Positions 1 to 42,690 of a stretch of DNA of 64,000 bases are shown in pieces (positions within the stretch are counted from its first letter, which is position 1; the number at the start of each line of letters is the position of its first letter). The stretch lies in the NCBI GenBank assembly GCA_946965045.2, contig OX337232.1, forward strand, positions 3,162,001-3,226,000, read 5' to 3'. Position numbers and translations under genes: made by a program. This stretch comes from Epithemia pelagica (taxonomy: Eukaryota > Protista > Bacillariophyta). Below the pieces are notes generated by a model that saw only the letters and a program-made list of their open reading frames with translations, did not search any database and was not told the origin of the DNA.

Positions 1-104
1 CACTCCAACCAATCTCACGCCACGGTACCGTTTTCGTCGCATCTTTCTCTCTCTTTCTCGCATATAGCCTAATACCAATGGATCCCAATTCTTTATTTGC
101 ACAG

Positions 105-412
105 CAGATACGCCCTGGTTGAATGGTCCGTGTCATTCCTCGTGTCGTTTGTCCTAGTCGATTCTTGACGAATGCTCGAGAGGCCATGGTTGGAACACTC
201 ACTCACGTACAATGGCGATTGTTGTTCTTCTTGTTCTTGTTGTTGTTCTTTGTTGTCGTCGTTCCATTGGTTGGAACCTTTTCGCAGGTAAGCATGTGGT
301 CTTTGGAAAAGTGACCGACGGAATGGATGTCGTCAAGAAAATCTCTTTCAAGGGCAGTGAAGTGGGCAAACCCAAGGCCGAAGTCAAGATTGTCGACTGT
401 GGCTCTTTGTAA
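105..412 (+). CDS. Cyclophilin-type peptidyl-prolyl isomerase, 3' end (micro-exon ~105/108-125, intron 126-287, last exon 288-412)
   Basis: Splicing AAT G|gtccg...ttcgcag|GT AAG CAT gives [25 protein letters not shown]...VKIVDCGSL*, the cyclophilin C-terminal signature. The 5' exons are not resolved in this window. Confidence 0.88.
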
Positions 413-1147
413 AACAGCATCGGTTATTTTTTGTAACGAGAGGACCATATGAACGACGCACAAACGGATCTGTGGAAGAATGCGAATCGAAGTGGATCAC
501 ACCAAAGAAGAGAGCGTTTCGATAGGCAGTTTCCATCACTAGAAGATGACATTCGTTTCAGTCTCATAAGAAACGAGGAGGAGAGAAGGATCTTGCGTAA
601 AATGACATAGAAGAGTACCTTCTTCCTACCAGCGATTTCTCTAGCTCATCCACATCCACATAGGAGTAGCTAGGAGTACTTATCTACGAATAGCACAGCT
701 ACCTGCTACTCCTACATAGCGTCATCCGCGATCGTTACTTTTGGCGCACTCCAAAAGAACACGTCAGTTCGGAAGCAACATGACGATCGAGACGTTTTGC
801 TCTAGACAGAGAAAAGTCGACAGATGAGTTACTCCTATATGTTACATCAACATCAAAGAGCTTTGTCCCTGTCCCCGGTTCTATTGTTGTTGCTGCTGTG
901 GTTGTTGTTTCTCCACACTGGCTGGTGTATTTATAGCGGCGAGACGAAACTCCGTGGACAACTGCAGTGCTTTCGTGTACAAAGAGGCAACACACAAAGG
1001 GTGTGTACATTGAATTCGGAGCATCGTATCGGCTTTGCATACCGTGGTTGCCGCCGATTCTGGAGACACCCACTCCAACACCATCACCACCGCTAAAAGA
1101 CAGTACAATCCACGTGACACCAACACCAGCATCCTCCTCACACTATC

Positions 1148-2383
1148 ATGCACAAACCATTCCTTCCAAATCTCGTTTCCTCTTGGTTTTTCGTCTTCTT
1201 GTTTGTAACTCTTTCGGCTGTCGTTCGCGATTGGAGTGTTCCCACGGCTCACTCCTTTTCCAGTGTCACCTACCCATCCTCATCATTGGTACCGCACGGG
1301 TTTGCAGTGGCCAATTCTCCTTCTCCCACAAGTACAAGAAGAATTCAATTGACAAGACAAGGACAAATGACTCCACGAAAATCTGCCGCCATGGAAGTTG
1401 ATTCGACGGTTCTGGTCGAACCGACCGTCGATACAGCCACTCCTACTATCAGTGCTGGCCGAAACATGGATCCACTTGCCGCCGACACTCACAAAGCGGC
1501 ATCCTTGTTGTCGTCGTCGACCACGAACAAAAACCAGAAGACCAAGGTGATTTATGGGATTCGTCATGCCCGATCGGTATCGAATGAATACATGAGACAA
1601 CTAGCCTGGGGCGATGCCACCTTTTGTGACGATTTGAAATTTGTTGATTCGCCTCTGTCCACGGTCGGCATGGAACAAGCCGTGGCCTTGCACGACCAAT
1701 TGTGTCACGACGTGGCGGCAGCAGCCGACCAGGACCATGCCAACGACCAACCACCAGTAGTACCTCATTGGTTGTCCCAGGTCGAATTGGTCCTTGTCTC
1801 ACCCTTAACACGATGTCTGCAAACCTTTGAATATGGATGTCGGCGCGCACTCGATCAAGTCCAACAACAACAACAGGCATCCTCCTCCAAGGATCCTCCC
1901 CGTATTCTGGCCTTGCCCTTGGCCCGTGAACGGGTCTTTACCGCGGCCGAAACGGGACGACCCTTGTCCCAAATTCAAGCGGAATTTCCCAATCTGGATT
2001 GGAGCTTGTTTCATTCCCAGCATGACGACGACGACACGACTCTGGAACACCCAACGACGACGACGAGCGAGGAATGGTGGTATACGGGTTCCTCCGTGGA
2101 CGACGCATACCGCGAATGGCGACCGCATGGACAAGGTCAATGGTATGCCGTTCCGGGAGAACCGGACCAGGTCTTTGCCGACCGGATGCAAGCCTTGCAA
2201 GAGTGGATTGCCCTTCGACCGGAACACACCATTTTGTTGGTGACGCATTGGGGTGTGTTGCGACACTTGTCCCAGGATACGGTGGATCCCGACAATACCC
2301 AAGTCTGTCGATTGGAACTGCCCGCTTTGGTTCCACAACAGCAACAACAAGCACAAGAACAACAACAACCGGCGCAAGTGTAG
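1148..2383 (+). CDS. Histidine phosphatase (phosphoglycerate mutase-like) family protein, probably plastid-targeted
   Basis: Motifs YGIRHARS (RH phosphohistidine motif), DSPLSTVGMEQA, VSPLTRCLQT and LVTHWGVL. The N-terminal hydrophobic signal ends in AHS-F, resembling a diatom bipartite ASAFAP-type presequence. Confidence 0.85.
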   Translation: MHKPFLPNLVSSWFFVFLFVTLSAVVRDWSVPTAHSFSSVTYPSSSLVPHGFAVANSPSPTSTRRIQLTRQGQMTPRKSAAMEVDSTVLVEPTVDTATPTISAGRNMDPLAADTHKAASLLSSSTTNKNQKTKVIYGIRHARSVSNEYMRQLAWGDATFCDDLKFVDSPLSTVGMEQAVALHDQLCHDVAAAADQDHANDQPPVVPHWLSQVELVLVSPLTRCLQTFEYGCRRALDQVQQQQQASSSKDPPRILALPLARERVFTAAETGRPLSQIQAEFPNLDWSLFHSQHDDDDTTLEHPTTTTSEEWWYTGSSVDDAYREWRPHGQGQWYAVPGEPDQVFADRMQALQEWIALRPEHTILLVTHWGVLRHLSQDTVDPDNTQVCRLELPALVPQQQQQAQEQQQPAQV

Positions 2384-2978
2384 AAACGAAAAACTTTACA
2401 AAGACGACAAGAACAACTCCAATGCAGGGAGGGAAACCTCAAATGGTTTGTCGATGCGAGCCGTGGTTTGTGTTGTTGTTGTTCTTGTTGTTGGGCCATG
2501 ACATGACAATACTACAAACGTTACTATACAGTAGGGAGGACGATATGACTTTGTGTATGCTCCATTGGGATTCCTCCTCGTCTAATAAAAGAGAGTGAAA
2601 AATTGTCACATTGCTCTTCCTCCATATACACGCACAGTTCTACATCTATATTCCAAGCATCATCACCACCACAAGAGGAATCGGACGACACCATCCCATG
2701 ACACACAGAGAGAGAGTCTTGCATTTCGTTTCGTGAAACGAGCAACCGGCACGAACCATCCTTCTTCTTCTTTTGGAGCCATCTTCGTGTACCAACGCGA
2801 GTCCAATCCATTCGTTCATCCATTCTGTTCATCTGTGGTTCTTATTGGAGGATTTGTCGCCACGGTCCGAAAGAGGACGGTGGCTGACATTTATGTGCGT
2901 GCCTGCTTCTTGTTCTTGTGTGTATGTGTGTGTGTGTGTCATGGTCCCTGTAATGGCCGTGCATGGTTTGTGTTCTTT

Positions 2979-4430
2979 TCAATACCATGACCGCCCCCGC
3001 AAGCCCGGAAAGGGTACGGGAGGTGGCCGTGAGGACAAAGGATCCGTAGAGGAAGTCGTGCCTTGTGCTTGTTGTTGTGCTTGTTGTTGTGCTTGTTGTT
3101 GTTGCTGTGCTTGTGCTTGATACTGCGATCGCAATTGACAATTGGTATACAAGACATGAGCCGTCCACAAGGTTCGAGCCATGTCGTAATTGGGATCGTA
3201 CGAGGGACGAATGTGATCGTTGCGAAACATCAAGGCCGTCGAACGTTGCGACAAATCCATGGTGGTTTTCTTTTTCTTTTTGGGTTGTTTGGTGGTTGTT
3301 GTGTCGTTCTTGTTCTTTGTGTCGTCCTGTGGTGCTTCTCGTTGAAATTCCTGCACCTTGTCAACCATGGAGGGACACAGGAGGGTATGGACGTGTGACT
3401 GTCCCGACACGAGCGGCGCTTGTGACAGGACCGTGTACAGCGCAGGTCCCGTCGAGTCGTCATTGCTGGAGGAATCGTTGGACGATGAATTCGCCAAGTG
3501 GGGTTGCAGAAAATTCCATCCCACCGTCACGGCCAAACCCAATCCAATACTCATGACGGCATGCGTCAGGCCATTGGGAACCAAGAGGGCTCGATTCGTG
3601 GCTTGGACCGTTTGACGTTCCAAAAAGGATGGTTTGGGTGGCAAGGTGGAAGTCTTTGTTTTGGGTTTCTTGGTTTGGTTGAGGCGTTGCACCAATTGCC
3701 GTCTCCAGGGCGCCTTGGTGGATTGATGGAGGGAATGGCCCAATTCTTGAGCGGCCGCTTGTTGTTGTTGCGGGGAGGAATAGGTGGGAATCATGGCCAC
3801 CATGTTCCACAAGGCCGTGGCCGTGGGCGAATTCAACCAAGCTTGACCGGCTGGTGTGGCCCTCCACGTCAAGCCGAGATAGGTCGTGGTCGTGACCGTG
3901 ACAAACAAGTAGAGGGGATCCAGCAAGAGGGGGGCCAAGAGTTCGTATTCCAAGGCAAAGTCATCGTCGTCATCATTATTGCCCTGACTATTAGGATTCG
4001 TCGTTTGCGGGAGAACCGTATCGTCCTTCCACGCCGCAAATGGATTCTCATCGTCGTCTTGTGGCTCGTCTTTTCGCCACAGTGATGATAGAGTGTCGGA
4101 CCACCACTGAGGATTGGTCATCCACCACCCTCGTGAGGACGACCACGAGGTCCACACGAGTTGGGGGACGAGGCGTTGATAGACGATCGACCATATCGTC
4201 AATTGCAAATCCATGCGACACTTGGACAAGAACTCCACATCGTATTGATTCGCCAAGGATGCCACGGTAGGAGGTTGTGGTTGTGGTTGTGGTTGTGCTT
4301 GTGCCTGTAGTGGTGCAGACGGATTCGCGTGGTTGGTGGATGACTCTCTATCAGGTGATGCTATTGGAACCGTGGAATTGGATGGTGTGGTGGTTGTGGT
4401 CGAACTACTACGACTGGCAGTAGTACCCAT
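2979..4430 (-). CDS. Hypothetical protein (483 aa) with N-myristoylation-like start and hydrophobic segments
   Basis: Long ATG-initiated ORF. MGTTAS fits the MGxxxS consensus. It has 2-3 hydrophobic stretches and a complex C-terminal block (HVHTLLCPSM...MFRNDHIRPSYDPNYDMARTLW). No family recognised. Confidence 0.65.
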   Translation of the reverse strand: MGTTASRSSSTTTTTPSNSTVPIASPDRESSTNHANPSAPLQAQAQPQPQPQPPTVASLANQYDVEFLSKCRMDLQLTIWSIVYQRLVPQLVWTSWSSSRGWWMTNPQWWSDTLSSLWRKDEPQDDDENPFAAWKDDTVLPQTTNPNSQGNNDDDDDFALEYELLAPLLLDPLYLFVTVTTTTYLGLTWRATPAGQAWLNSPTATALWNMVAMIPTYSSPQQQQAAAQELGHSLHQSTKAPWRRQLVQRLNQTKKPKTKTSTLPPKPSFLERQTVQATNRALLVPNGLTHAVMSIGLGLAVTVGWNFLQPHLANSSSNDSSSNDDSTGPALYTVLSQAPLVSGQSHVHTLLCPSMVDKVQEFQREAPQDDTKNKNDTTTTKQPKKKKKTTMDLSQRSTALMFRNDHIRPSYDPNYDMARTLWTAHVLYTNCQLRSQYQAQAQQQQQAQQQAQQQAQGTTSSTDPLSSRPPPVPFPGLRGRSWY

Positions 4431-4986
4431 GGCAGTCTAGTCGAGGATCGTGATGGTCTGCTGGTCACAAAAAATTTTCTTTCTCTCGTTGCGTTTGTTT
4501 GTGCCGTCGATCACACTATACGGTAGAGAGTAGATCTCTCTCTCTCTCACACACACACACACCACTCTTTTTCTTTGTTGGTGAAGATGGATGCCACAAC
4601 ACACCAACTGCTTGTTCTTCTTCTTCTTCTTGTGTTTTGTGTCTACCGATATGTTATTGTTTCCGAGCAGCAAACGGTTCAATGTTCACTCTCCAGATCT
4701 GATGTGTAAGAAATGGCAGACTCGCTGTTGTTGTCGTCAAGGGATGAGGATCTTTTCGTGGTGGTGATGCGAAAGGAGGATTGGTGGGTGCGAGACGACG
4801 AGTGGCTTAGATCCAACGCGTTTGGGTCGCGTTAGAGTCTTTTTTGGTCGCATTTTCGGAAGGCCAATCCATCATCCATCAACCACACAGATTCATTCAT
4901 CACGTCTCTTGTGGACATGTGATTGTGGATCCATCATTCACTTTGTCTTTCTCTAGTGGTCCAATTTTCTCTACCAGCGGAGGCTT

Positions 4987-6726
4987 ATGCTTCCTGCTTC
5001 TAGGTCCACTGACTGTTCAAGAGTGTTCCAGATCAACCCTCTTTTCCGCAGAGCAAAGAAAGTCGTCGTCGTCGTCATGCCAACGCGAACTTTGGTCCAC
5101 GGTGCGACGACCAATCAGAGGATGAATCCAAGGATGAGAAGACGAAGAAGGTTTGCGTTTGTTGGTGTTCTTCTTGTTCTTGTCGTCGTCGTTGGATGTA
5201 GTTCGTCCTGGGGTTTGGTGGTGGTGCACGCCTTTGGTATCATTCGCACAACGAATACGAATAAGAAGATGAAGCATGGCATACCATCCAGAACAACAAC
5301 AACAACGACGACGACAAGACCAGGATCCAGTCCCTCGTCTCTGGAACCATCCTTCGGGATGTTGTTGCAAGAACGTTGCTCCCCGAATTCCGAACCATCA
5401 TCACAACAACAACCACATCATCAACCAACCTATCATGTCGTACAAGGAGTGCAATGTGTGGCCGTTTCCGTTCCCATGCCAGCCTTGGCCAATCACAATG
5501 ACAATAAAAATAACGACTCACCTCCAATCGTGACCATTCTCGAAGCCACTGCCACGGCACAAGATGAATTGGTCAATCATGCCTTGCTCACAGAACAAGA
5601 ATTGTTGCTGCAACAACAAGAACAACAAGACGAAACCGACGCGACGTCCACTGATTCGTCGTCGTCTGGTAGTGCCTCTCCATTGTTATTATTGTCGGCT
5701 GGCGATCCCTACGGTGCCGTCTTGTGGCCGGCCGCCGCCGTGGTGGCCCACACACTTATCCAGCAACTCGAGGCTCCAGCCAAACCTCCCAAAACGAAAT
5801 GGGTCTTGGAACTGGGAGCCGGAACGGGATTGGTGTCCTTGACGGCACTCTTGTGGAACCACAAGCAGCAACAGCAGCCGCAAGCACCATCATTCTCCTC
5901 CTACGTCAACCGTGTCGTGGCAACGGATTATGAACCCTTGCCCTTGGCCTTGCTCGAGCATGCGGCGCACCATTTGAATCATCCTCCAACAATCCTCTGG
6001 AATGACACCGGCAATAATAGCAAGGAGGATACCAATACGAATAGCACCTCTTCCTTGTCATCCTGGCAGGATCGATTGGAGTGTCGGTTACTCGATTTGT
6101 GCAATTTTACCCAACCCTTGCCCTTTCCCCACATTACAACCACAACACCAACACCAACGGACGACGACGACGAAGCCAACGACGAACAGGGCTTTGTGGT
6201 GGCGGCCGATATCTTGTACGAACCGCGGACGGGTCGGGCCATGGCGCATCGCATTGTGCAAGCCTTGTCGTATGCGTACCACCCACCAAAGGACGACACA
6301 AACGACCCTACGAATACCACGACGACCACCACCACGACCGAGTTGCAACTCTATCCACACAATCACCACATCTCTACTTCTTCCAGTAGTACTACTACTA
6401 GTACGACTCCTACCCGCATCAAGCCTCGTCGCTCCGTGACGGTCATTGTCGGCGATTCTCCCGGTCGACCGGGACGACCCATCTTTTTGCAAACCTTGCA
6501 AAGTTTGTTGCACAATGACCGGTTGGACTTTGCGCCCGTCCAAGGTTCCAAAGTCCATGGTCCTCGTCATGAACTCATTTGTGGACCCGGTTCTGAATCT
6601 GCCGCCACCGCCACCGCAACAACAACAACACCATCCAACGACAGCAACAATGACACACCATTGTCTTCGGCCGTCACAGTGGCCGTCCTCGTCTTGTCGT
6701 CCGACGACTATTATGCTACACTCTAG
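4987..6726 (+). CDS. Methyltransf_16-type (lysine) SAM-dependent methyltransferase, start codon uncertain
   Basis: Motifs DPYGAVLWPAA, VLELGAGTGLVSL (motif I), VVATDYEP and VVAADILYEP. A hydrophobic signal ending VHA-F suggests plastid targeting. Confidence 0.85.
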   Translation: MLPASRSTDCSRVFQINPLFRRAKKVVVVVMPTRTLVHGATTNQRMNPRMRRRRRFAFVGVLLVLVVVVGCSSSWGLVVVHAFGIIRTTNTNKKMKHGIPSRTTTTTTTTRPGSSPSSLEPSFGMLLQERCSPNSEPSSQQQPHHQPTYHVVQGVQCVAVSVPMPALANHNDNKNNDSPPIVTILEATATAQDELVNHALLTEQELLLQQQEQQDETDATSTDSSSSGSASPLLLLSAGDPYGAVLWPAAAVVAHTLIQQLEAPAKPPKTKWVLELGAGTGLVSLTALLWNHKQQQQPQAPSFSSYVNRVVATDYEPLPLALLEHAAHHLNHPPTILWNDTGNNSKEDTNTNSTSSLSSWQDRLECRLLDLCNFTQPLPFPHITTTTPTPTDDDDEANDEQGFVVAADILYEPRTGRAMAHRIVQALSYAYHPPKDDTNDPTNTTTTTTTTELQLYPHNHHISTSSSSTTTSTTPTRIKPRRSVTVIVGDSPGRPGRPIFLQTLQSLLHNDRLDFAPVQGSKVHGPRHELICGPGSESAATATATTTTPSNDSNNDTPLSSAVTVAVLVLSSDDYYATL

Positions 6727-7372: not shown

Positions 7373-9903
7373 TCACATCATGGACCTTGGAGATTGTTGT
7401 TGTGGTTGTGATGATGATGATTCGTCTGATTCTTGTTGTTGTCGTCGTCGTTGTCGTTCCTGTTGTTGCCGTATACCCCAATCCATGACTACGGTATGAG
7501 ACGCTGCTTGTTGTTGTTGTTGTCCAAGCTCGAATTCACCACAATTGGTTCGATACGAATGGTCGTAGGGTGGTAAAATGGGAGAGGTTGCCATGCGATG
7601 ATGATTGGTCGGAGGACTGCTCGTAGTCGTAGTCGGATGATGATGATGATTATGTGTGTGCAGCGTCAAGGCGGGAACACGGGGTGTGGGTGGCAACAGA
7701 GCCGAGCTGGTAGCAGCCGCCATGGTTGCAGTGGTTGCTTTGGAAGCGTCGGCAGTATCCTTTGTCGTCTGGTCCGTGGTGGGTGGCACAGTCGTCTCTT
7801 TGGGAGCCGACTTTGTGGGTGAGGCCCTGGTGGTCGTATGATTCGTTGGTGCTGCTGCTGGAGTGGCCGTCATGGTCCACGGAATGGGTTGTGCCAATTC
7901 GGGTGGATCGTCCGAAACTTCGTCGTCGTCTTCTTGTTCCAGTAGTTGTGCCAAGGGACTCGTCGTAGCGTTGTTGGTAGCGGCAGTTCGGATCATGGTG
8001 GTGGAAGGATGATAATGCATGGGTCGTAACAGTGGTTCTCCTTGAATGTATTCCCACAATCGCACGGAAATGGTGGTACCGGCCGATAACAAAATGCGAC
8101 CCACCAAGGGAATTTGCGGAAACCAAGGAACAAAACAACACAATTGTCGCAACAAGATATACACGGTCGATCCGGCACCGGTTGCCATGGCTGTGTGTGT
8201 TTCCAGAACAAACATGTAAAAAAATCACAAATCAGTACACAAGAACAAGCACCAATCATTTTGTCGAAACAATAAAAAATCATAGAGAGAGAGAGAGAGA
8301 GAGAGAAGTGAGATGACACCCTCGGAACTCGTTCCAGCACACCCACCACAACAATTGTGCGGTACGTACCATACGATTGTCCACCGACGGCCAAATGTCG
8401 TCCACACAAGACATCACGGGCAATGCCGCCAAAACAAATGGTAATGCCCGACGTGGCCGCCACGAGGGGATGCAAGCCCCGGACAATGGCCATGTGCACA
8501 CCCGTCACAGCCAAGGCGGACAAGGCCAAGGTATCGAGGCCGTACATAATGGGACTGGCATTGAATTTGTGACCAATCAAGAATTGCATTTCTTCAATTT
8601 CAATATAACCCGAATGATCGGTATCGACCAATTCAAACAAGAGCGCCGGATCAATCGTCGGATCAATCAAGGGTTTGTCCGATGGTGCGGTGGAATGACG
8701 GACCAAGGCGTGATGAGGATGATGCGCTGCATGGTGAGAGTCGTGGGAGGAAGAATCCTGCTGCTGAGAGGATCCTCCCGGAGCATGAGGAGGATGATTG
8801 GCATGAGTCGTGGCATGCCGATGAAAGAGGGATTCGGACGTGGAGGCTTCTCGTGTTTTGCGAGCGGCTGTATCGAGGGCGGACACGACGCGTTGCTTAA
8901 AGGCGGGATCGCGCCAACAGGCGCGACAAAAGGCCGCCTGCGAGACACTGCCATTGTCCTCGAGTTCGCCATGCAGTTCAAATTCGGTCCGCAATTCTTG
9001 TTGCGCCTGATGGCGACAATAGACGGGCCAGGCAAAAAAGGTGACCATACTGGCCAAGACGGCCACATAAAAGACGGTCGGATTGCGGACCCAATTGACG
9101 CCCGGTCGATCCAAGAGAGCCGAGGTGCCATACAATAAATTGTTGAGAGTGCCACCGCCCAAACAGGAAATGCATCCCACCAGTGTGGAAGCGACCAAAT
9201 TCATGCCTGCTTCACCGGCCATTTGCGTACCAACGACAGCAAAGAGGGTTTTGCCTCAGACATCGAGGGCAAACAAGAGTTGAGCACCCAACTTGTCCCA
9301 GGGCGTGGTGGGTTGTTCGACGGCCGACAAGCAAAATTCTCGAGCCCATTGTCCTTCGAGGGCTTGTCGACCGGCCGTCCGAAAGGCATGCACCGAAGAC
9401 AATTGAGAATTACTACTACTTCTTGCTGTTGTCGTGGATCCTTCAGCCCTACTGATATCCAACAATTTGCGTCGGAGCAGGTCAATTTCCGATTGGGTCA
9501 ATCGAACATTGGATTGTTGGGCCATTTGGGCCAAATCCATGAACGAATCGCCGCGATCCAATTCTGGATTGATTCGAGCCGACGTAAAAAACAAGCGAGA
9601 CGACGAGCCACGAAACGGACCACCACCACCACTTGTACTAGTAGTAGGGGAGGATTGGGGCCGTAGTTGAAGTGATCTGGTGGTTGCAAAAGTACTGCTG
9701 CTGCTGCTACTGGCGGCCAATGGCCTCCGAAATGCAAGCGACTGCAACGGTCTTTTCCAAGTCGTAGTAGAAGTAGTAGGAGTGGTTGTATTCGTCCTCA
9801 TCAGGCCTCCTCCTCCTCCTCGTGGCGGTTGGACTTGGAGTGATTCGAGCAGGGAGGAGGAAACCGTAGTAGATTTTGTGGGAGCAATCCGTGGTCGGAT
9901 CAT
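7373..9903 (-). CDS. TRIC/UPF0126 (glycine-transporter-like) membrane protein with inserted EF-hand; in-frame TGA at 9258-9256; intron 8369-8191
   Basis: Two UPF0126-like repeats: LDV*GKTLFAVVGTQMAG...LGGGTLNNLLYG and GLDTLALSALAVTG...FGGIARDVLCG. EF loop DTDHSGYIEIEE. Splicing TAT G|gtacgt...acacag|CC ATG gives SYAMATGAGSTVYILLRQL. ORFs 10056-9256 and 9222-7993 are in the same frame across one TGA. Confidence 0.78.
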
Positions 9904-13280: not shown

Positions 13281-14174
13281 CTTCTTTCCTGCGTGTATCG
13301 TTCTCACAAAGAACGTCCTCGATATGGTTGTGTTTTAGGTTCTCTCTTGCGGTGTGTATTCTTCATGTCGTCATGGCGGAAGCAGCAAATTGGAGCGACA
13401 CCGGGTTGTAATCTGTCCGATCCGGCGGGTGTATAACTTCTGTCATCCATCCGACATTTTTCTTTTTTCATTTTAGTTTTTACTTGAAATTATAACTCAG
13501 TTTTTTCTCTAAAAGCAGTAATTATAACGTCCATAGCAACTGTCATAACTGGCTTCGCGCGCTTCGCCCTGGATACGGAGCACGACGCGAAGAAATCCCA
13601 CACAAGGATGAACAGTGAACACACACGTGAAACAGAAAAAAACATGCACAAACACAAGACAAGTGGCAATGGCCCACAACAAGGAAAGCTCTTAGTACAT
13701 TGACTGCAACTAAAATACAAGCATAGTCAACTCTATATGTATCTAGGTACTCCTCCTATTTCTTTAGGCTTCCTGGCCCTATCCATTGTATTGTGTCCTT
13801 CCTTAGACTCTGATGTCGTCCACACACTGGTTGATTGTCATCTTGTCATTTTTCATCCTTCTTCTCATTCGGTTGATTGCCGCGTTTACTGATGATCCAG
13901 GGGGTAGATCTTGACAGTAGTATTCATGCTATGGTCATTCATTTTGCTGATTGGTTGATTTTGTTGCAGCCCCATTGTCATTTCTTGTGGTTCGTCGAAA
14001 AGTGAAAAGTGAGACGATTCATGGCACAAAATACGAGGCGAGGCCGGCGTTCAGATTTCAAAGATCGAAGGCAGGCTGACGATTTGACATGGCAGGCGCT
14101 TTCGAAAAAAAACAAGAGGCCAAAGTTGGGCAACGCACGAAGGACAGAAAATATACACCTCTTGAATCGTTCCC

Positions 14175-14365
14175 TTTGCTGCGAGGAGTAGCTTCGAGGA
14201 GGGAGGCACGAGGAGGGGCGTAACGACGAGAAGGGCAATAGGTCCGAGGAGTGGACTGCCCCCCGCGTCAGCGGATATAGGGGCAGTCCACGACGAGGAC
14301 CTATTGCCCTTCGAGGAGTTACGCCCCGACGAGTGCCCCCGACGAGAAGCGTTCCGAGCAGCAAA
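14175..14365 (+). other. 191-nt strand-specific fold-back with four double tandem-G.A internal motifs
   Basis: Helices tttgctg/cagcaaa, gctt/aagc, ggaggca/tgcccc, gggcgtaa/ttacgccc, aagggcaataggtc/gacctattgccctt and tggactgcccc/ggggcagtcca are separated by opposed CGAGGAG/CGACGAG heptamers. Apical mini-hairpin ccgc-gtca-gcgg. Confidence 0.9.
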
Positions 14366-14632
14366 TGTCATAGGCGTCCGTTGCGTCCGAGGGGGGGGGG
14401 GGGGTAATAAAGTACGTTGAGTTTTCTAATTGTTTGGAATACATAGGAAAACAGTACCATTGTAAAGAAAGATTACTTACGACAGTTAGGAACAAACTAA
14501 TTAGGACTCACAAATATACTTAGAGGTTACCTAGGAGCTACGAGTTTCCAAGCAGATAAAGTGGCCGCATTTGTGTGTTGGGCGTTGTGTTTTGTGTTTT
14601 CATCATTCGTTTTGAAAAAGGAAGACCTGACC

Positions 14633-17600
14633 ATGACGAAACCTCCTACGGCCGTTGTCAGCCCCATGCCTTCCAAGGACAAGGAACATCGTGGCATTGT
14701 GTCTTCTCCTATCTCCATTGCGTCTTCTTCGTCGTCTTTGTCGTCGTGTTCATCGTCTTCGTCATCTTTATCGTTGTGTTCATCCTCGTCGGACGCCATC
14801 TCACTCGCCTTCGTACCTTTGGACGGTACCTTCGTTCCAAAGATGGATGAATGCACTGGGAGCGACACCGACACTCACAGTGTTCATTCCGATCCTTGGT
14901 ACCTTCCCAAGTTGGAGAAAATGTAAGTTTGATTGTTGTTTTTCGTCATTGTCGACCAGTCTTCCTTCCTGCGACTCTTCCTTCCTTCCTTTTTCTTCCT
15001 GCGCGCGTACCCCGCCTCATCCATTTTTGAATTCGTTGCTGTGTTTACCGTGCAAAACAAACCTCACACTTTTTCTTCCATTGCCATTTTTGCATCGCAT
15101 TGCAGGAAACGAAAGACCATGGCAAAGACTCCACTCCGCCTCCGTCGCTCGAAGCGCCAACTTGCTGCCGCGGCAGCCAAGAAAAAGTACCAGGATGATG
15201 TCGACGATGACATTCCACGCTCCCCTGTTCGGAAAGCCCCTCGAAAGAAGCTCCTTCGGAAGAAAACGGTCCCTCCACCCGTCGTCGACGACGGGAAGGA
15301 GAACCTTCCTCCCCCTCCTCTTTCCTCTTGTCGTCGCCCGAAAGAAAGGTAAGTTGTTGTATCATCGCTGTCTTCTTCTTCTGCTTCTTCTCTGTATGAT
15401 TGTTGTGTCTGACAAGAATGGTCTCCTCCCTTTCAGCACCAATCCGAAGAAGGTCCCTCCTTCCATTTTGGACCAGGACGACGATGACGACGACGATGAT
15501 CTTCCTCCTCTTCAGCCCTTTGTAGACGATGATGAAGACGACGACGACGATTTCTTCAAGTATTTGGAAGATTCCGACGACGAGGAACCACTGGACGAAC
15601 ATCATCCTCCTGCTGCCATTGGTCCCCCATCTCCACTCGATACACGAACCATTGCCATGGCATGCATCAAGCAGAGACATGTGACCGAAAATGAGGATGG
15701 CGAGCTGATGATTGCGGAGCATCGAAAACTCCCCGTGGATGTGCCACACACCAAGGACAGTATTCAGTACTGGAACACCTTTGCTCGCATCAGTGAGGAT
15801 GTGTACGAAGACGAGAACCACAAGTACGACGTTCGCGAGCTCTCGCAGAACTCGGAGTCGTACAACAAGGCCAAGGCGGACTCTTTCAAACGATTCTTGG
15901 ACATTCTCCGTCGCCATAAAGAACACTATAGAGGACTCGCGGCACCCATCATTGATCCTGATACTGAAAAGGGCGAGAATTTGAAGGTGCCCAAGCTTTT
16001 TGTTGCTCTCAGGGGGGGGTATTACTCGTGGCAAACTTGGGTTGTTGAATTCTCTCTGCATGATTTTCTGCATGAATCTGCGCATGGCTGGGTACAAAAA
16101 GGGGGAGCACGATCCCCACGACCCCAAGTATCACTACCAGCCAAACACGACCGGCAAAGTGCTCAATCACATCTTTTCCATCCTGCGAGCCAATGGAGTC
16201 GTGATCACGCAGTCGGACCTCAAAGGGGAGGGCTCGTACCATGCCTACTTGGAGAACTTGTGGTCGGAAACCGCCACCGTCCGTTCTGAGTTTGGCCGAC
16301 TTCCCAAACGAGCCGGAGTTTGCCTCAACGACGAGAAGTCCATGCAAAAGTATGCGAGTCCTCCACTTCGTCCGTTCGAAATTTACAAGGATCTCCTCAT
16401 GATGGTGTTCTACAAAGTCTGCCGTGACTGTAGTTTTCGATGTCTAGAGGTACGTCCACGATCCGTTGGATTGTCGTATGGATCACACGCTTCTCACCTC
16501 TGCTTGTTGTTTCTACTCAGATGCATTTAGCAAAAGTAACAGACTTTCTATTTGTTAAAAGTCTAGATGATTCGCACGGCGATCTCGCTGGTAAGGCGGC
16601 GATCATCCCTCTTGACTCCGGTCACCATAAGAATGTAAAATTGACTCTTGCCAACCCTTCGTTCCGGCGCGCAGTGGATTGCAAAGGGAACATGACTGTG
16701 GAAAACCCCAAGGATCCATGGAGCACCTACAAACTGGTCATGGAGTACCGTAGAGTTGCCCACCCGCCGGGTTGGAAAGGGCTATTCTTCCTTCGTGAAG
16801 CACCCGCCAAAGTAATTGCTACACGCGCTGACGGATCGACTCACCGTGCCTGGACGGATCTTGTTCCTGATATGTCGAAAACAAAGATTAATCCATTGAC
16901 TGGCATGCGTCCTGGTGGAAAGTTGGGCGAAAATTTCGCTGCACGCAACACGAAAGAGTTGGCTAAGCGTTGTGGTTTCGAAGGAACCGGCAACTTTACT
17001 GGTCGTTCCGCTCGGAGAACTGGGATCACCACGGTTGCGAACTCGGGCGTTCCTCAACCTCTTGCAACAAATTACGGCCGCCACAAGGGTGAAAAGATCA
17101 ACTTTGAGTATCAAGAAGTGACGGACCACTCGAAACAGAGGGCAGTGACGGCCCATTGGTACATGCCATCCGATGACGAAGAAGAAACCAAAAAAGGTAC
17201 GTTGTTGTCTGACTGATGCATGTTGTTACTACTTCTGTATCTTACCTCTCTACTGTTCTCGTTTCAGAGGAACCTAAGAAAAAATCTCCACCAGTAGCCG
17301 CAAAAAAAGACGACGAAGACGAACCACCCCCGCTCCTTCCTCCTTCTGCATGGGACAACAACAACACAACAAACACCACACACTCTCATCACCAACACGA
17401 CAACTACCAGCACAACTACCAGCGCAACGAGAGTCGCAGTCACTACCACCAACGCGACAACCACTTCAATCGGTCGCCTCCTCCTCCTCCCCCTCATTCT
17501 CGATCGTACTCCTACCGTTCGAGCGATCGTAACCATGGTGGGTGGACTCCTCCTCCACCTCCACCATCGTATGGACCCCGTTACGATCATTACCGCGGGC

Positions 17601-17830
17601 CTTCCCCTCCGCCACCCCCTCCTCGATCATATTCGCCACCTCCTCCTGTTCCTTCGTCCCGTGTGAATGGCCCAACGGCCCATCACTATCACCATCATTC
17701 CTCGCCACCACCGCCTCCACGTCAGTATCCTGCATCTTCTTCGTGGCCTAACCACGGCAACCACCACAGTGGCTATCACCGACATGGCGGTGATCAATAC
17801 CATTACAACCACGGGGGTCGTCACTACTGA
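14633..17830 (+). CDS. Tyrosine recombinase (Crypton/DUF3504-like); exons 14633-14922, 15106-15348, 15437-16449, 16521-17196, 17268-17830; apparent frameshift at G8 run 16012-16019
   Basis: Four canonical introns keep the frame. Box I Arg in SFRCLE|M. Box II TGRSARRTGITTVANSGVP...YGRHKGEKINFEYQE supplies R, H and the catalytic Tyr. The upstream block LLNSLCMIFCMNLR...YQPNTTGKVL resembles the Crypton/ZMYM-type binding domain. The C-terminal tail is Pro/His/Tyr-rich. Confidence 0.82.
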
Positions 17831-18406: not shown

Positions 18407-19133
18407 TGTTGCTTTTGTTGCACGCGGTTTGTTTTTCGTGGTCTGTTTCGGCTCATTTTGTGACGGTTTCCGTTCGCCTCATTTTTTCGGTTTTTCCCAC
18501 GACCGAAAATTTTACTTATGTACACTAAAATTAAAACTTGAGTACAGTAAAATTCGGGCTATAGTAACTAGGCACGTGCGGGGGGAATACATCCCCCCCG
18601 AGGATCAGCGGTCGTGTCAAACACAAATTTCAGGGGGTCGCGGATAGTCTCCAAGCCATCGGAAAAATCCATAATCTCCGACAATGGCAGTAAAAGATCG
18701 AAGTCGCTTTCGATTTGGAAGCCATCCAGGACAACGCGGAACGAACGCAATCTCGGAACAAACAAGAATCACAAGAAGAAAGCTACAAGGAGAAAGGGAA
18801 AAGAGGGGGAGCGAGTAAATCATTGGAAAGGAACTGGGTGTGTTGTGAGAGGGGATGGACAGCGCCACAACGCTCTCCAACCAACCACGTGTTGTGGTTT
18901 GACAATGAGGATCGGAACGAAATGGGTTCGCCCTACTGAAACTCTTGGGGGCGGAGTTTGAACACAAAGCTTTGAATCGCGGATCCAATCGTCAGGGATT
19001 GCTACCAAGGCCCAACTATGAGTCCAGAATGAAAGACTGCAACGCGTAGAGTGATACACAAATGTGTACAAGGACTATGCAAGGTTTTCTTACAGCATAT
19101 ACTACAGGCACAGGTACAGAGATTTATAGCGTC

Positions 19134-34763: not shown

Positions 34764-36965
34764 ATGAAATCCACCAATACCAGTAAAGTTGGATTGTCGT
34801 CGTCACGATCCATGCGCAAATCCACTCGAATTCTTTTGGTCGTCCTCGGTCTGGTGGCCTTGCATTTGATACTGCAATTTCATGTGTGGACGCATCCTCA
34901 ACCCAACCAGTATTATGATCATCAGCACTCCTGGAAACAAGACTTCTTTGTCCCCTCGCATCGTCCCAAACAAGAAGAAGAAGGACAAGACAAGCTAATT
35001 TTACAGCCATCACTTGGTGCCACTCTTCTACAAGAAGGTAGTGAAGACAAGTGGCAACTCTTTGCCAACTTTTATCAACAGCAACAACAGTCCCGAGGGA
35101 AGCAACCACCGCCAAAGAAGCAGAGTGTACCGAATCAAAATCAAGAGGAATTACCCATTGTGAAACACTATTATCAACAACAAAAACAACATTCGTCATC
35201 AACAACGCGAACGACTCGAACGTCGGATGGCCATCCCGTGGCTGGCTTGTCTTGTCAAGCGCATGGTGGACCCAATGACCAGACGGGCAGTCGCAGCGAA
35301 TCTCAAGCAGTGCAAGACATGGTCTACTGGTACGATTGGCCTACCGATGCCACGTGGCATTCTCCCCATGCCCCTCCCACAGACAGTCACCAACCACAAA
35401 AGTATTTGACCTTTGAACCCGATGAAGGTGGATTCAACAATATTCGCATGGCCTTTGAAACCGCCCTCGTCATGGCCATGGGGATGGGACGTATTTTGGT
35501 GTTGCCCCCCGAAATGAACTTTTATCTCTTGACCAATTTTTCGGCGGGTGATTTTCATGCATCGTTTGGATTCAAGGACTTTTTTGACTTGTCGGCCATT
35601 GTCAAAGAGCATGAGCGGGCCGCGTCCAGTTCTCAAAAGGCTGCTGCCTTGCAAGTCATGAGTATGGAAGGGTTTTTGCAACGCGAAGCCTTGACAGGAC
35701 ACTTGGTGGACCGAACGACGGGTCAACCGTCGTTCCCACCCGGCAATCTCACACAATGGAAGGGTCGGATTCCGCCCAATTTCTTGGCCTTTTTGACAAG
35801 GGCCCACAACAACAATGGCACAGACAGTGACAATGACAATTTAGCGGCAAATACCAACGCCTCCTCCTCTTTGTGGAAGTGGTTGCGTCGTGTCACGGCC
35901 AATCCGGAATGGCAGTTGAGTAAATGTGTAGCCGTGATTCCTCGAGCACCGGGACGACAGGCCTTGGAGGAAATTCAACACGAGGTATGGGAACCGCTGG
36001 TACAAAAAGACGAAACGCGCCGGCAAAAATTGCCGGAACTTTTGCGCAATCGCACCAATTTGGTCTGGCGCAGTCGCTTTCATTTCTTTGACAAGAATCC
36101 CGCAGCCGTCAATGCTTCTGCAGTGGATCGGTTATCCCAAGTCTTGGCGCATCGCCAAGGCCTTTGTTTGTACAATGAAACCTTACAAGAGGCCCGTGTC
36201 GTTCATTTGCAAGGGGAACAAAAGGCGGGATATCGACTCTTGATTCCCTTTTATGCCGCCGTCCTGTTTCAAGAATGGCAGCACGATGTATGGATGAAAC
36301 GCTTTGTGCGAGATCATTTGCGCTACCACGATGATATTCAATGTGCAGCCGCCCGCATTGTTCATGCCGTCCGTGAAAAGGCTCGCATCGTCAATCGTCA
36401 ATTGGCAAATGCCACCCAAGGCAATAAGAAAGATGAAGAAGATGTCTCGTTTCATAGCATGCACATTCGTCGGGGCGATTTTCAATTCAAAGTGGTCCGC
36501 AACATGGAGGTGGAGGACATTGATGAAAGTAATATTCGCAAATGGTTTACACCCGGCAAGGTTGTCTACATTGCGACGGACGAACGGAACAAGACTTTTT
36601 TTGATCCTCTCCGCGAACATTACGAACTCGTCTTTTTGGACGACTTTATCGAGTTGCTGTCGGGTGTGGATTCGCATTATTATGGCATGATTGAACAATT
36701 GGTGGCCGCGCAGGGAAATGTCTTTGTGGGGTCCCTCTTTTCCACCTTTACGGGATATATTCATCGGTTGCGAGGATACCATTCCCACAAACGACAATGG
36801 CCGGGTTACGAAATGGGTGCCTTGCCCACGAGCTATTACTTTACCCCCAATCCCATGGCCCACAAACGCAAGGTCATGCATGAGTATCATGCATTGGAAC
36901 CAGCCTTTTGGCAACGAGAATTCCCCATGGCGTGGAGGGATCTAGATCATGGGCTAGTACACTAG
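34764..36965 (+). CDS. GDP-fucose O-fucosyltransferase family protein, type II membrane (733 aa)
   Basis: N-terminal signal anchor; motifs KYLTFEPDEGGFNNIRMAFET, MHIRRGDFQF, VYIATDE and IEQLVAAQGNVFVGSLFSTFTGYI. Confidence 0.88.
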   Translation: MKSTNTSKVGLSSSRSMRKSTRILLVVLGLVALHLILQFHVWTHPQPNQYYDHQHSWKQDFFVPSHRPKQEEEGQDKLILQPSLGATLLQEGSEDKWQLFANFYQQQQQSRGKQPPPKKQSVPNQNQEELPIVKHYYQQQKQHSSSTTRTTRTSDGHPVAGLSCQAHGGPNDQTGSRSESQAVQDMVYWYDWPTDATWHSPHAPPTDSHQPQKYLTFEPDEGGFNNIRMAFETALVMAMGMGRILVLPPEMNFYLLTNFSAGDFHASFGFKDFFDLSAIVKEHERAASSSQKAAALQVMSMEGFLQREALTGHLVDRTTGQPSFPPGNLTQWKGRIPPNFLAFLTRAHNNNGTDSDNDNLAANTNASSSLWKWLRRVTANPEWQLSKCVAVIPRAPGRQALEEIQHEVWEPLVQKDETRRQKLPELLRNRTNLVWRSRFHFFDKNPAAVNASAVDRLSQVLAHRQGLCLYNETLQEARVVHLQGEQKAGYRLLIPFYAAVLFQEWQHDVWMKRFVRDHLRYHDDIQCAAARIVHAVREKARIVNRQLANATQGNKKDEEDVSFHSMHIRRGDFQFKVVRNMEVEDIDESNIRKWFTPGKVVYIATDERNKTFFDPLREHYELVFLDDFIELLSGVDSHYYGMIEQLVAAQGNVFVGSLFSTFTGYIHRLRGYHSHKRQWPGYEMGALPTSYYFTPNPMAHKRKVMHEYHALEPAFWQREFPMAWRDLDHGLVH

Positions 36966-40749: not shown

Positions 40750-42690
40750 ATGTGGATTCTGCCTTGTCTCTCCATGATGCTGGCCATGATTTCGGCCCAA
40801 ACAACAGCGCAAGCAACGGTTCAAACAACAACCACGTCTCTTCGTCGTGCCTCTCCGGCAAGCGCCAATCATCGTCGTCTCGACGACACGGCTGCCACTT
40901 CCCCGCCCACTACGGCTCCGACGGCTGCCCCCGTTGCTGCAACAACGACGGAAGCACCGTCCTCGCGACCGTCCCCCGTACCCTCCCTTCCGGCCACACC
41001 TGTCCCGACTCTCGCACCCTCGGCGACACCGTCAGCAGCACCATCGGTCGCGCCCGTTCCCGTGACACCAGCTCCGACGACGGCTGCTCCCACACCAGCT
41101 CCGACGACGGCTGCTCCCACACCAGCCCCCACCACACCGGCTCCCACACCAGCTCCGACACCCGCTCCTACGACAGTCGCTCCCACACCGGCTCCGACAC
41201 CGGCTCCGACACCAGCTCCGACACCAGCTCCGACCCCCGTGCCCACCACCCCGAGTCCGACGGCTGCTCCGACACCGGCTCCGACACCAGCTCGGACCCC
41301 CGTGCCCACCACCCCGAGTCCGACGGCTGCTCCGACTCCGGCTCCCACTCCGGCACCGACCCCGGCTCCCACCCCCGCTCCGACGGTGACACCCAGCGCG
41401 TCGCCATCGGCCGCTCCCAGTGCCACTCCCTCAGCGGCACCCTCGGCCCGGCCATCGGTGCAACCGTCCCAGTCGTCGGAACCCTCGGCCGCTCCCTCCA
41501 CCCACCCCAGTGCCGCGCCCACCACCGCCCCGTCCACCACCCCGTCGGCGGTGCCGTCGTGGCAACCCTCGGTCTCCTTCCAACCCACAGTGTCAAATGT
41601 CCCGAGTTTGGATCCCAATTCCTATGATGAAGAAATCATTTCTGCCGCGGGCGAAGCAATTCGAACGATTCAAAAGTGTCGTCGCGTCAATCCGGGCGGG
41701 TTTCCGGTGGAAACCATTGTATGGAACTATACGTACCAAATGACGCTCAAGAAAAACACCAACGTGTCGTTGGCCGTCCTCGAGGGCGAAAAGTTGGTGG
41801 GAACCAAGTTGGCGACCTCCATGTGTGATGTGGACGGTGAAAATCGGTTTTATCTGCACACGTTGGATTCCGTGCCGACCGATACCGTTCAAGCCGAATG
41901 TGCAACGACCGAAACCGATTATCGGTGCCATGTCGTGCAAGGCTACGCGACCTCGACTGTCTTTGTCGATCCGACCTCCAATGTGACGCTCGAAGAAATC
42001 AAGCATCGTTTTGGATTTCTCTTTAACGCCAGCAGAGCAGACATTATCGCAGAATTGAAACAATTGGATACCTTGTCCTCACTCTTTGCCACCTTGGGAG
42101 ACGGCAATGGTGGTGGTGTGTTGATTCAAGACGAGGGGACTCAAGATACAGTCGCGGCCACGAGTGCCATTGTCGGAGGAGCCGCCGGTTTGATGCTCTT
42201 GTCGGGACTCGTCTTTTTGGCTGTCCGACGACGCGCCATGCGACGACAATTGGGTATGCATCGATTGGAAGATGATGGACAGGACAGTCGGGCCGATGCC
42301 GAAGCGGGCGATGCCCCCCAAACAAAAGAAGCCAACAAGGAGGAAAATGACGATGACGACGAAAGTCGCATGTCCAAGGATCAAATGGCCACCATGTCCA
42401 TTGCGGGTGATTCCTTTTACACCAAGGGAGGAAGGGGCATTGACACGATTACCGAAGAAGAGGATCACGAAGAACAAATGTCTGTTTCGGATAACATGTC
42501 GTGGTTGGGCGTCGAAGTCATGGCGGGCGATGGAGAATTTAGTTTGGCCTCCTATTCGGAACGATCGACGGCTACCAGTGTAACGGATGGAGAACGGTCC
42601 GTTTCCAAGTCGCCTCACAGAGGAGGACGGGTGCGAGAAATTATTACACGCAAGGCGAGTATGGGAAGTTTGTTGCGGGGATGGCAATGA
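40750..42690 (+). CDS. Mucin-like type I membrane protein, paralog B (long APT/PTP repeat stalk)
   Basis: Signal peptide, tandem APTP/AAPT repeats ~41070-41400, 4-Cys domain (WNYTYQM...EGEKLVGTKLATSMC), TM (AIVGGAAGLMLLSGLVFLAV) and acidic tail. Confidence 0.82.
   Translation: MWILPCLSMMLAMISAQTTAQATVQTTTTSLRRASPASANHRRLDDTAATSPPTTAPTAAPVAATTTEAPSSRPSPVPSLPATPVPTLAPSATPSAAPSVAPVPVTPAPTTAAPTPAPTTAAPTPAPTTPAPTPAPTPAPTTVAPTPAPTPAPTPAPTPAPTPVPTTPSPTAAPTPAPTPARTPVPTTPSPTAAPTPAPTPAPTPAPTPAPTVTPSASPSAAPSATPSAAPSARPSVQPSQSSEPSAAPSTHPSAAPTTAPSTTPSAVPSWQPSVSFQPTVSNVPSLDPNSYDEEIISAAGEAIRTIQKCRRVNPGGFPVETIVWNYTYQMTLKKNTNVSLAVLEGEKLVGTKLATSMCDVDGENRFYLHTLDSVPTDTVQAECATTETDYRCHVVQGYATSTVFVDPTSNVTLEEIKHRFGFLFNASRADIIAELKQLDTLSSLFATLGDGNGGGVLIQDEGTQDTVAATSAIVGGAAGLMLLSGLVFLAVRRRAMRRQLGMHRLEDDGQDSRADAEAGDAPQTKEANKEENDDDDESRMSKDQMATMSIAGDSFYTKGGRGIDTITEEEDHEEQMSVSDNMSWLGVEVMAGDGEFSLASYSERSTATSVTDGERSVSKSPHRGGRVREIITRKASMGSLLRGWQ

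Follow-up and report, generated by a model that had tools for sequence, protein, structure and literature searches.

Cryptons are described as transposons with terminal direct repeats of 4–6 bp, represented in stramenopiles by CryptonS (PMC3212892), and as lacking terminal inverted repeats or other structural features (PMC3212892; PMC12130899). Here we analyse 64,000 nucleotides (nt) of the diatom Epithemia pelagica (assembly GCA_946965045.2, contig OX337232.1, positions 3,162,001 to 3,226,000, forward strand; this whole stretch is the window, and positions below are window positions unless another locus is named), which contain a Crypton-like tyrosine-recombinase (YR) element opening with a long, strand-specific hairpin that we call the rod. 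To our knowledge, no class of eukaryotic DNA transposon is less well understood than Cryptons, with unknown recombination sites and no system reconstituted in vitro, and site-specific recombination on folded DNA has so far been seen in integrons, CTX-type phages and relatives of these alone. The attC sites of bacterial integrons, 57–141 nt long, carry R and L boxes (GTTRRRY), are marked as to strand by extrahelical bases and have been demonstrated to recombine as single strands; the attP(+) site of CTX phage is a ~150-nt fork-hairpin on the single-stranded phage genome, recombined by the host's XerCD; and DIRS elements, which also use a YR, encode reverse transcriptase and RNase H and move via RNA. 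Our preferred reading of the diatom element, held with a little less than even confidence and leaning on analogy with these systems, is that the rod belongs to a cis-acting recombination-end structure of Crypton-like YR transposons that would be read as a folded single strand.

The rod occupies positions 14175–14365 of the + strand (191 nt) and comprises 70 Watson–Crick pairs, 19 G·A or A·G oppositions and one G·T. Along it the heptamer CGASGAG (S, G or C) occurs nine times on the same strand, all at the positions reported in a first-pass annotation of the window: five copies form an array on the 5′ arm (14182–14251; starts 14182, 14195, 14209, 14224 and 14245) and four on the 3′ arm (14291–14346; starts 14291, 14312, 14327 and 14340), and from 14195 onwards each 5′-arm copy opposes a 3′-arm copy in register. 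Nine copies in 165 nt of one strand compare with ~0.05 expected at the background rate; over both strands of the window the count is 51, against 14.8 expected from shuffles. When the fold is laid out, heptamers of the CGAGGAG type face heptamers of the CGACGAG type across four 5 × 5 loops (gagga × gacga, at 14196/14341, 14210/14328, 14225/14313 and 14246/14292), the third with the two types swapped, and every loop runs G·A, A·G, Watson–Crick centre, G·A, A·G, the central S base being complementary to its partner's in all four. Apart from these the only internal loop is a 2 × 2 G·A loop in which the 14182 heptamer lies opposite CCGAGCAG, and the stems between loops measure 3–16 bp. The apex is CCGC-GTCA-GCGG (14263–14274) followed by a 5-nt ATATA bulge (14275–14279). 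In facing heptamers, swapped pair, covarying centre and apex alike, this fold agrees with the one the first-pass annotation had drawn.

The same annotation had called the structure strand-specific, and folding of both strands bears this out. On the − strand the G·A loops become C·T and T·C loops; with DNA parameters the + strand of the rod folds at −69.4 kcal/mol (z −11.5; none of 200 shuffles as good) and the − strand at −65.4 kcal/mol (z −9.9), and with RNA parameters, which credit tandem G·A, the values are −143.0 and −119.2 kcal/mol. The + fold is thus the better one under both parameter sets, and mainly so with those for RNA, by which it is 10.9–23.8 kcal/mol more stable than the − fold in eight of the nine hairpins compared, the exception being a copy with a partly inverted rod (L006, below).

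Downstream of the rod, open reading frame (ORF) pieces at 14655–17830 (+ strand), in several frames broken by introns, make up the recombinase gene, of which the catalytic piece (16440–17213) serves for all protein comparisons given here. Pfam returned no match in those + strand pieces or in any other ORF piece of the 4.4-kb element, and a profile search of PDB sequences gave nothing meaningful, so the recombinase call is based on the modelled fold, on residue conservation and on features from the Atlas. The catalytic piece has 92 relatives in a library of 1.8 billion proteins; an alignment of 32 of them conserves R129, R189-x-x-R192/R193, R214-H215 and Y224, and 4 of the 32 give weak, sub-threshold matches to Pfam Phage_integrase. 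The best PDB matches that Foldseek finds for an AlphaFold model (pLDDT 81) are Cre, XerA, Flp, XerH, lambda Int, Tn1549 Int and QRICH1, a protein derived from a Crypton; the probabilities go as high as 0.99, yet the E value is 0.04 and the TM score 0.44. Phage_integrase clusters account for 82 of 100 named feature hits in the ESM Atlas, where DUF3504 clusters occur too. Compared with the R-H-R-Y set, the pattern R…RxxR…RH…Y is conserved, the histidine of HxxR being an arginine and the box-I arginine lying outside the catalytic piece examined. We accept the gene, on the modelled fold and these residues, as a probable Crypton-type tyrosine recombinase that departs from described Cryptons in having RxxR in place of HxxR; the tyrosine recombinase named in the first-pass annotation is in keeping with this assignment.

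Eleven paralogous loci (L001–L011), all from one ENA assembly (ERZ21939226), encode recombinases 39–99% identical to that of the window. L004 and L005 (both 99%) form family A with the window copy; L001 (65%) and L003 (66%) are family B, L002 (60%) family C, L006 (42%) family D, L007 (39%) and L008 (43%) family E, and L009 and L010 (both 46%) family F, to which L011 is allied by 96.6% DNA identity to L009. A hairpin of the same type lies at the 5′ end, at the same relative position and on the recombinase-sense strand, in all ten copies that keep their 5′ part, across six subfamilies: in each of these loci a motif cluster 2.1–2.6 kb upstream of the catalytic exon folds into a rod. L011 shows no hairpin in the upstream region scanned, which is occupied by a Copia-type retroelement (RVT_2; L011 positions 1–4780), with a mirrored RVT_2 gene downstream too. 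Rods of families A–D are 191–212 nt long and share the inner blocks GGGCAATAG and GTGGACTGCCCC and the apical CCGC..GCGG, whereas families E and F have short rods of 136–137 nt whose triple loops, GA-C-GA-G-GA, stand opposite the same 8-mer. The rod is, almost certainly, a cis element of the transposon. No hairpin of this kind is reported in the Crypton literature that we covered, incompletely, and terminal structure is described there as absent; a G·A-zippered 5′ rod of ~136–212 nt therefore sets these elements apart from Cryptons as described.

Across eight distinct hairpins, a fold-back alignment that takes account of G·A counts 506 Watson–Crick pairs, 134 G·A or A·G oppositions and 39 other mismatches; G·A and A·G make up 134 of the 173 non-Watson–Crick oppositions, and 13 of the 39 others fall in the flipped part of L006. 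The order 5′-GA-3′/3′-AG-5′, closed by C–G and G–C pairs, is a stable arrangement in DNA and RNA, and all 56 tandem purine steps follow the 5′-GA/3′-AG order, with none reversed, as in known sheared G·A motifs, the sheared conformation being predicted in our case. The base between two tandems is Watson–Crick paired in 19 of 22 loops. G·A oppositions are kept between families whose recombinases are only ~40% identical, and one loop has shifted: a tandem of family A is Watson–Crick paired in family B, which has gained a purine-rich mismatch three pairs along.

The stems change in pairs. Double changes between families are seen, and compensatory changes outnumber disruptive ones 11:4 (A–C), 16:8 (B–C) and 4:0 (E–F). 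Pair counts from an unfitted MAFFT alignment of families A–D, set against 500 shuffles, give 84.9% paired cells compared with 75.5% in shuffled alignments (no shuffle reaches the observed value), 20 pairs altered on both sides (reached by one shuffle in 500) and a covariation score of 0.293 compared with 0.114 (reached by none), with slid-partner controls at 0.05–0.07. Judged from sequence, the fold is under selection, and its mismatches are not a product of decay.

The ends of the element add a second layer to this structure. Between the window and L004 or L005, blastn similarity (91–97% identity) runs exactly from 14175 to 18614/5 on the + strand with unrelated flanks, and because it begins exactly at 14175 the first base of the rod is the first base of this 4.44-kb copy. 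In the full family A copies (L004 and L005) the rod is preceded by a leader, GTAATATTACA, with GTAGTTCTACA in its place in family B, GTAATACTAC in family C and 26–27 nt starting GTAGTA in families E and F. Similarity between copies with unrelated flanks accordingly begins 8–27 nt 5′ of the rod, and it stops at a conserved 3′ motif (…GGTCG, …GGTAG or …GTTAG). GTAG stands at both termini in L001 and L003 (family B), a short direct repeat that matches the 4–6-bp repeats of Cryptons; the other families have GTAA/GTCG, GTAA/GTAG and GTAG/TTAG.

Just downstream of the rod, a segment that we call IR-L (14375–14397, + strand; CGTCCGTTGCGTCCGAGGGGGGG), which includes a further CCgaGG tandem G·A, is complementary to the 3′-terminal segment IR-R (18593–18614, + strand; CCCCCCCGAGGATCAGCGGTCG), which ends in the crossover-type motif GTCG. 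The same arrangement recurs in families A, B, C, E and F, where the 30–65 nt that follow the rod pair with the last 30–65 nt of the element; in family F, blastn aligns the 50 nt that follow the rod, in reverse complement, with the final 50 nt of the element. When the last 110 nt of the element are placed before its first 340 nt and folded with RNAfold, the joined ends give one continuous rod in families A, B (L001), C and E (L007), with the junction in the left arm, 8–27 nt outside the rod base, and with another tandem G·A, CCgaGG facing CCgaGG, in the outer stem of all four. Anchored extension scores for the joined ends exceed those for the integrated flank in family A (45 versus 8), in both family B copies (47.5 versus 13.5 in L003; 43.5 versus 0 in L001), in family C (60.5 versus 17.5) and in family F (91.5 versus 35.5); in family E, where a large bulge intervenes and the 5′ boundary was set too far in, the anchored score fails. 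The complete structure is predicted to measure 270–330 nt and to exist only where the ends are joined, as a circle or head to tail. Within the predicted fold the crossover motif, whose position we take from copy boundaries and not from empty sites, has a duplex segment on either side and faces a few unpaired bases. Because the fold continues over the joined ends with the crossover inside it, the possibility of a recombination site, one of several functions considered in the first-pass annotation, is strengthened. Published accounts of Cryptons mention neither an inverted-repeat pair (here 30–65 bp) with one internal member nor a crossover point within a split fold-back. The window copy differs from other copies at 14390–14405, where the G run after the rod is longer and the ATGTA part of IR-L is lost; in our sequencing data, assembler contigs drawn from three of the organism's runs and from a single marine metagenome, those over this interval leave out 4 bases and read G>A and G>T at 14402–14403.

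From the observed anatomy, linkage, terminal position, covariation, strand asymmetry and junction-spanning complementarity we propose the following mechanism. An integrated element would be laid out as crossover motif (GTAG/GTAA), leader of 8–27 nt, rod, IR-L, YR gene, IR-R and a second crossover motif (GTAG/GTCG/TTAG). Joining of the ends, in an excised circle or a head-to-tail junction, would bring IR-R into pairing with IR-L, so that the + strand could form a single continuous rod of 270–330 nt with the crossover point in its left arm and duplex on both sides. This folded + strand, most likely single-stranded DNA (ssDNA), may be the form that the recombinase recognises, with IntI on attC and XerCD on CTX-phage attP(+) as precedents. 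The loops, GA-S-GA opposite GA-S-GA, would keep the + fold continuous through stacked sheared G·A pairs, and the contrast of G·A loops on the + strand with C·T and T·C loops on the − strand would supply strand identity and, probably, repeated points of protein contact.

A folded single strand would explain three features together: heptamers that run in the same direction on both arms, spacers that covary, and a crossover that falls inside the end-joined fold. We consider it fairly probable that the rod acts as a single-strand fold; that the acting strand is DNA and the recombinase's substrate is a more doubtful proposition, which we hold at somewhat less than even odds. The first-pass annotation had proposed a selected ssDNA or RNA element of the recombinase system: selection, linkage and terminal position uphold the element itself, while its single-strandedness, and DNA rather than RNA as its substance, we infer, as we do recombinase binding and the exact positions of cleavage. 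None of the outcomes that the annotation had listed as refuting it was observed. More speculatively, the tyrosine recombinase may work on one folded strand of DNA, which would be a first among eukaryotic transposons: an attC- or CTX-like system would have arisen within a Crypton lineage, with a tandem G·A “purine zipper” as its strand-choice code and a crossover site assembled only when the ends join. If the single-strand reading holds, folded-DNA site-specific recombination extends from bacteria to eukaryotes. The family is recent and present in many copies, its end structure is conserved and has sharp limits, and the proposal predicts the strand used, the key motif and the location of the crossover. 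The hairpin is a practical signature by which to find and delimit such elements in algal genomes, and the G·A-zippered rod a natural model of long runs of sheared purine pairs; we know of no other natural cis element with 4–9 double or triple tandem G·A motifs along a 200-nt rod.

The resemblance to attC lies in an imperfect palindrome conserved more as structure than as sequence, with strand-specific irregularities, a tyrosine recombinase and a crossover in the stem, and in the division of the palindrome, the greater part of which lies at one end of the integrated unit and the rest at the other. In contrast to attC, the structure described here is eukaryotic, reaches 270–330 nt when complete and bears repeated tandem G·A, and its recombination as a single strand is our proposal. 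No R or L box with a GTTRRRY core occurs in the element sequences read, and the enzyme is Crypton-like, which makes the relation to attC one of analogy and not of membership. With CTX-phage attP(+) the diatom element shares a folded strand in which two inverted segments make a duplex site, with an imperfectly paired centre at the crossover, but it encodes its own enzyme and has no known single-stranded genome stage. DIRS elements are likewise YR elements with complementary internal and terminal segments, in which joining of the ends creates a structure that the linear copy does not have; they lack a G·A rod. Membership of a DIRS-like group was rejected, as no copy contains a reverse transcriptase domain and the RVT_2 domains in L001, L004 and L011 belong to neighbouring Copia elements. 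More broadly, no other transposition enzyme and no reverse transcriptase or RNase H was found in the element, and the gene tables of L001–L010 list no domain in its part of the locus. In having a probable tyrosine recombinase as its only recognisable enzyme, no reverse transcriptase, and dispersed copies with unrelated flanks, the element resembles Cryptons.

Several points weigh against a folded single DNA strand as the recombinase's substrate. No circle joint appears in the contigs of the three runs and the marine metagenome, in which rare forms cannot show. We know of no source of ssDNA for a eukaryotic YR element. The strand difference is just 1.4–4.6 kcal/mol by DNA nearest-neighbour parameters; on the + strand G·T wobbles (nine) do not exceed A·C mismatches (eight), giving no strand signal beyond the G·A loops; and only half of the tandems stand in the pyrimidine-GA-purine context that favours sheared pairs in DNA. 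Hairpin-bearing loci are known from one genome only, through a single assembly, and in a metagenomic relative with 33% identity (L132) the 2.7 kb of contig available upstream contain no hairpin; another distant relative, L133, is too short for this comparison. Pair-preserving change could also come about by gene conversion from arm to arm in a duplex palindrome. Conversion alone would erase the G·A loops, however, and their persistence in six subfamilies makes it insufficient.

Some of the same evidence could be accommodated by RNA. A sense transcript, made by read-through from upstream or across a circle or tandem junction, would fold into the mismatch-studded rod and regulate the element, perhaps in processing, in insulation from host read-through or in pairing the 5′ and 3′ ends of the mRNA via IR-L and IR-R. 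The structure does lie on the mRNA-sense strand in all copies, IR-L and IR-R stand where 5′ and 3′ untranslated regions would be expected, and RNA parameters credit tandem G·A well, preferring + over − by 11–24 kcal/mol. The rod also gives a weak match to a long-hairpin family of Rfam, MIR1858 (RF04119), at 44.9 bits on the + strand and 33.7 on the −; the gathering score is 137, by which we rejected this identity, and nothing in the window reaches gathering score in Rfam. With the rod 8–27 nt from the terminus, an integrated copy has no room for an upstream promoter of its own, the wobble enrichment that would signal RNA pairing (G·U-type over A·C) is not seen in the counts above, and a crossover point within the fold has no obvious meaning for RNA. 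We regard such an RNA-level role, together with the functions suggested for it, as unlikely.

It is similarly unlikely that the rod works only as duplex DNA, the heptamers serving as direct-repeat binding sites, like lambda Int arm-type sites or iterons, for a recombinase domain or host factor, and the palindrome serving for bending or cruciform extrusion, so that no single strand is ever the substrate. Nine 7-mers in the same orientation do adjoin the crossover site, as arm-type sites would, and the inner blocks of families A–D are conserved as sequence and not by pairing alone. The region moreover behaves as a recombining duplex palindrome in L006, where the inner rod segment GGGCAATAGC...CTATTGCCC (L006 positions 4489–4606), apex included, is inverted, placing its heptamers on the − strand with C·T loops; this segment matches family A better in reverse (80.5% versus 74%). 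One contig loose end at window position 14262 carries the L006 apex in reverse complement, and with the inversion this indicates that the apical segment is present in both orientations, flip and flop. Binding sites alone, however, leave unexplained the exact register in which heptamers face one another in the fold, the complementary centres of 19 of 22 loops, the 56 of 56 steps in 5′-GA/3′-AG order and the spacer covariation that preserves pairing, and conserved mismatches would bring a cruciform no gain.

A long, imperfect, strand-specific hairpin whose apex occurs in flip and flop orientations also recalls rolling-circle plasmid origins and parvovirus hairpins, and the rod could be imagined as a strand-specific priming or origin fold of a replicating or single-stranded circular intermediate. 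Only one copy is flipped, and the crossover site in the fold favours recombination over priming. Pfam recognises no Rep/HUH endonuclease or polymerase gene among the element's ORF pieces, the recombinase being the only recognised protein and the Foldseek matches being tyrosine recombinases, on which grounds we rejected membership of the rolling-hairpin or rolling-circle replicons; a replication signal is accordingly very improbable. That the rod is a relic palindrome without present function, simply carried along by the element, is scarcely credible: the window copy is itself 5′-truncated, but the hairpin is kept in six subfamilies, down to 39% protein identity, with compensatory changes and a single, non-random type of mismatch where neutral decay predicts mostly one-sided, mixed mismatches.

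One feature that the first-pass annotation did not have in view is that the window copy is without the 8–11-nt leader and the crossover motif of full copies. The motif GTAATATTACA occurs nowhere in the 64-kb window, and the copy is therefore 5′-truncated. The left flank (13700–14174) has a summed contig word depth 20–70 times that of the unique right flank, which marks it as a high-copy repeat in its own right, and it matches no fetched locus. We ruled out displacement of the leader upstream by a nested insertion, since the motif is absent from the window and the left flank matches no other locus; with leader and crossover motif missing at the left junction, a rearrangement or deletion has taken away the true 5′ end.

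Copies of the element are dispersed: the window copy, L004 and L005 are 91–99.5% identical with differing flanks, and further families are represented by L001–L003 and L006–L011. L004 and L005 are ~99.5% identical at different sites, which argues for recent mobility. Between 15001 and 16500 the window differs from both by 5–15%, with an indel region of 86 columns, and elsewhere in the element by 1–2%, while L004 and L005 agree with each other throughout, that block included; this pattern suggests a window copy of mosaic origin, from two subfamilies. The rod is 100% identical in the three family A copies, but extra conservation of the rod among them (0 differences in 191 nt) is not significant, as only 1–2% of positions differ elsewhere outside the divergent block. 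Summed word depth, which adds up contigs and is not a copy number, rises from ~46–79 in the unique right flank through 340–440 in the element body to 2100–4500 in the rod, a gradation that suggests several family A copies and many more rod-like sequences.

Beyond the assembly, the conserved-core pattern GGGCAATAG-N9-GTGNACTGCCC found no match in JGI metagenomes, and a search for related loci with one N-terminal protein of a metagenomic relative found nothing. A generic pattern of three heptamers proved too unspecific to be of use, the matches listed in viral contigs being loci with one match each. Within the assembly, L010 carries another, diverged element (L010 positions 8822–8973), with a leader and a rod of its own, ~50 nt past the end of the family F copy, at the contig end; such a near-tandem layout is what integration of circles at or close to resident ends would produce. 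The recombinase gene region of family F contains a 135-nt direct duplication, ~85% identical (L009 positions 5638–5772 and 5833–5964), which is present in L010 and L011 also.

Two further features of the window lie apart from the element. Collinear inverted repeats at 35211–36950 and 43111–44856, ~1.7 kb per arm and 71–83% complementary, enclose 6–9 kb and are a large inverted duplication or an element with long terminal inverted repeats, unrelated to the hairpin. At 41041–41382 a tandem array with a 12-nt period, ACACCGGCTCCG-like, probably codes for a Pro/Thr/Ala-rich repeat.

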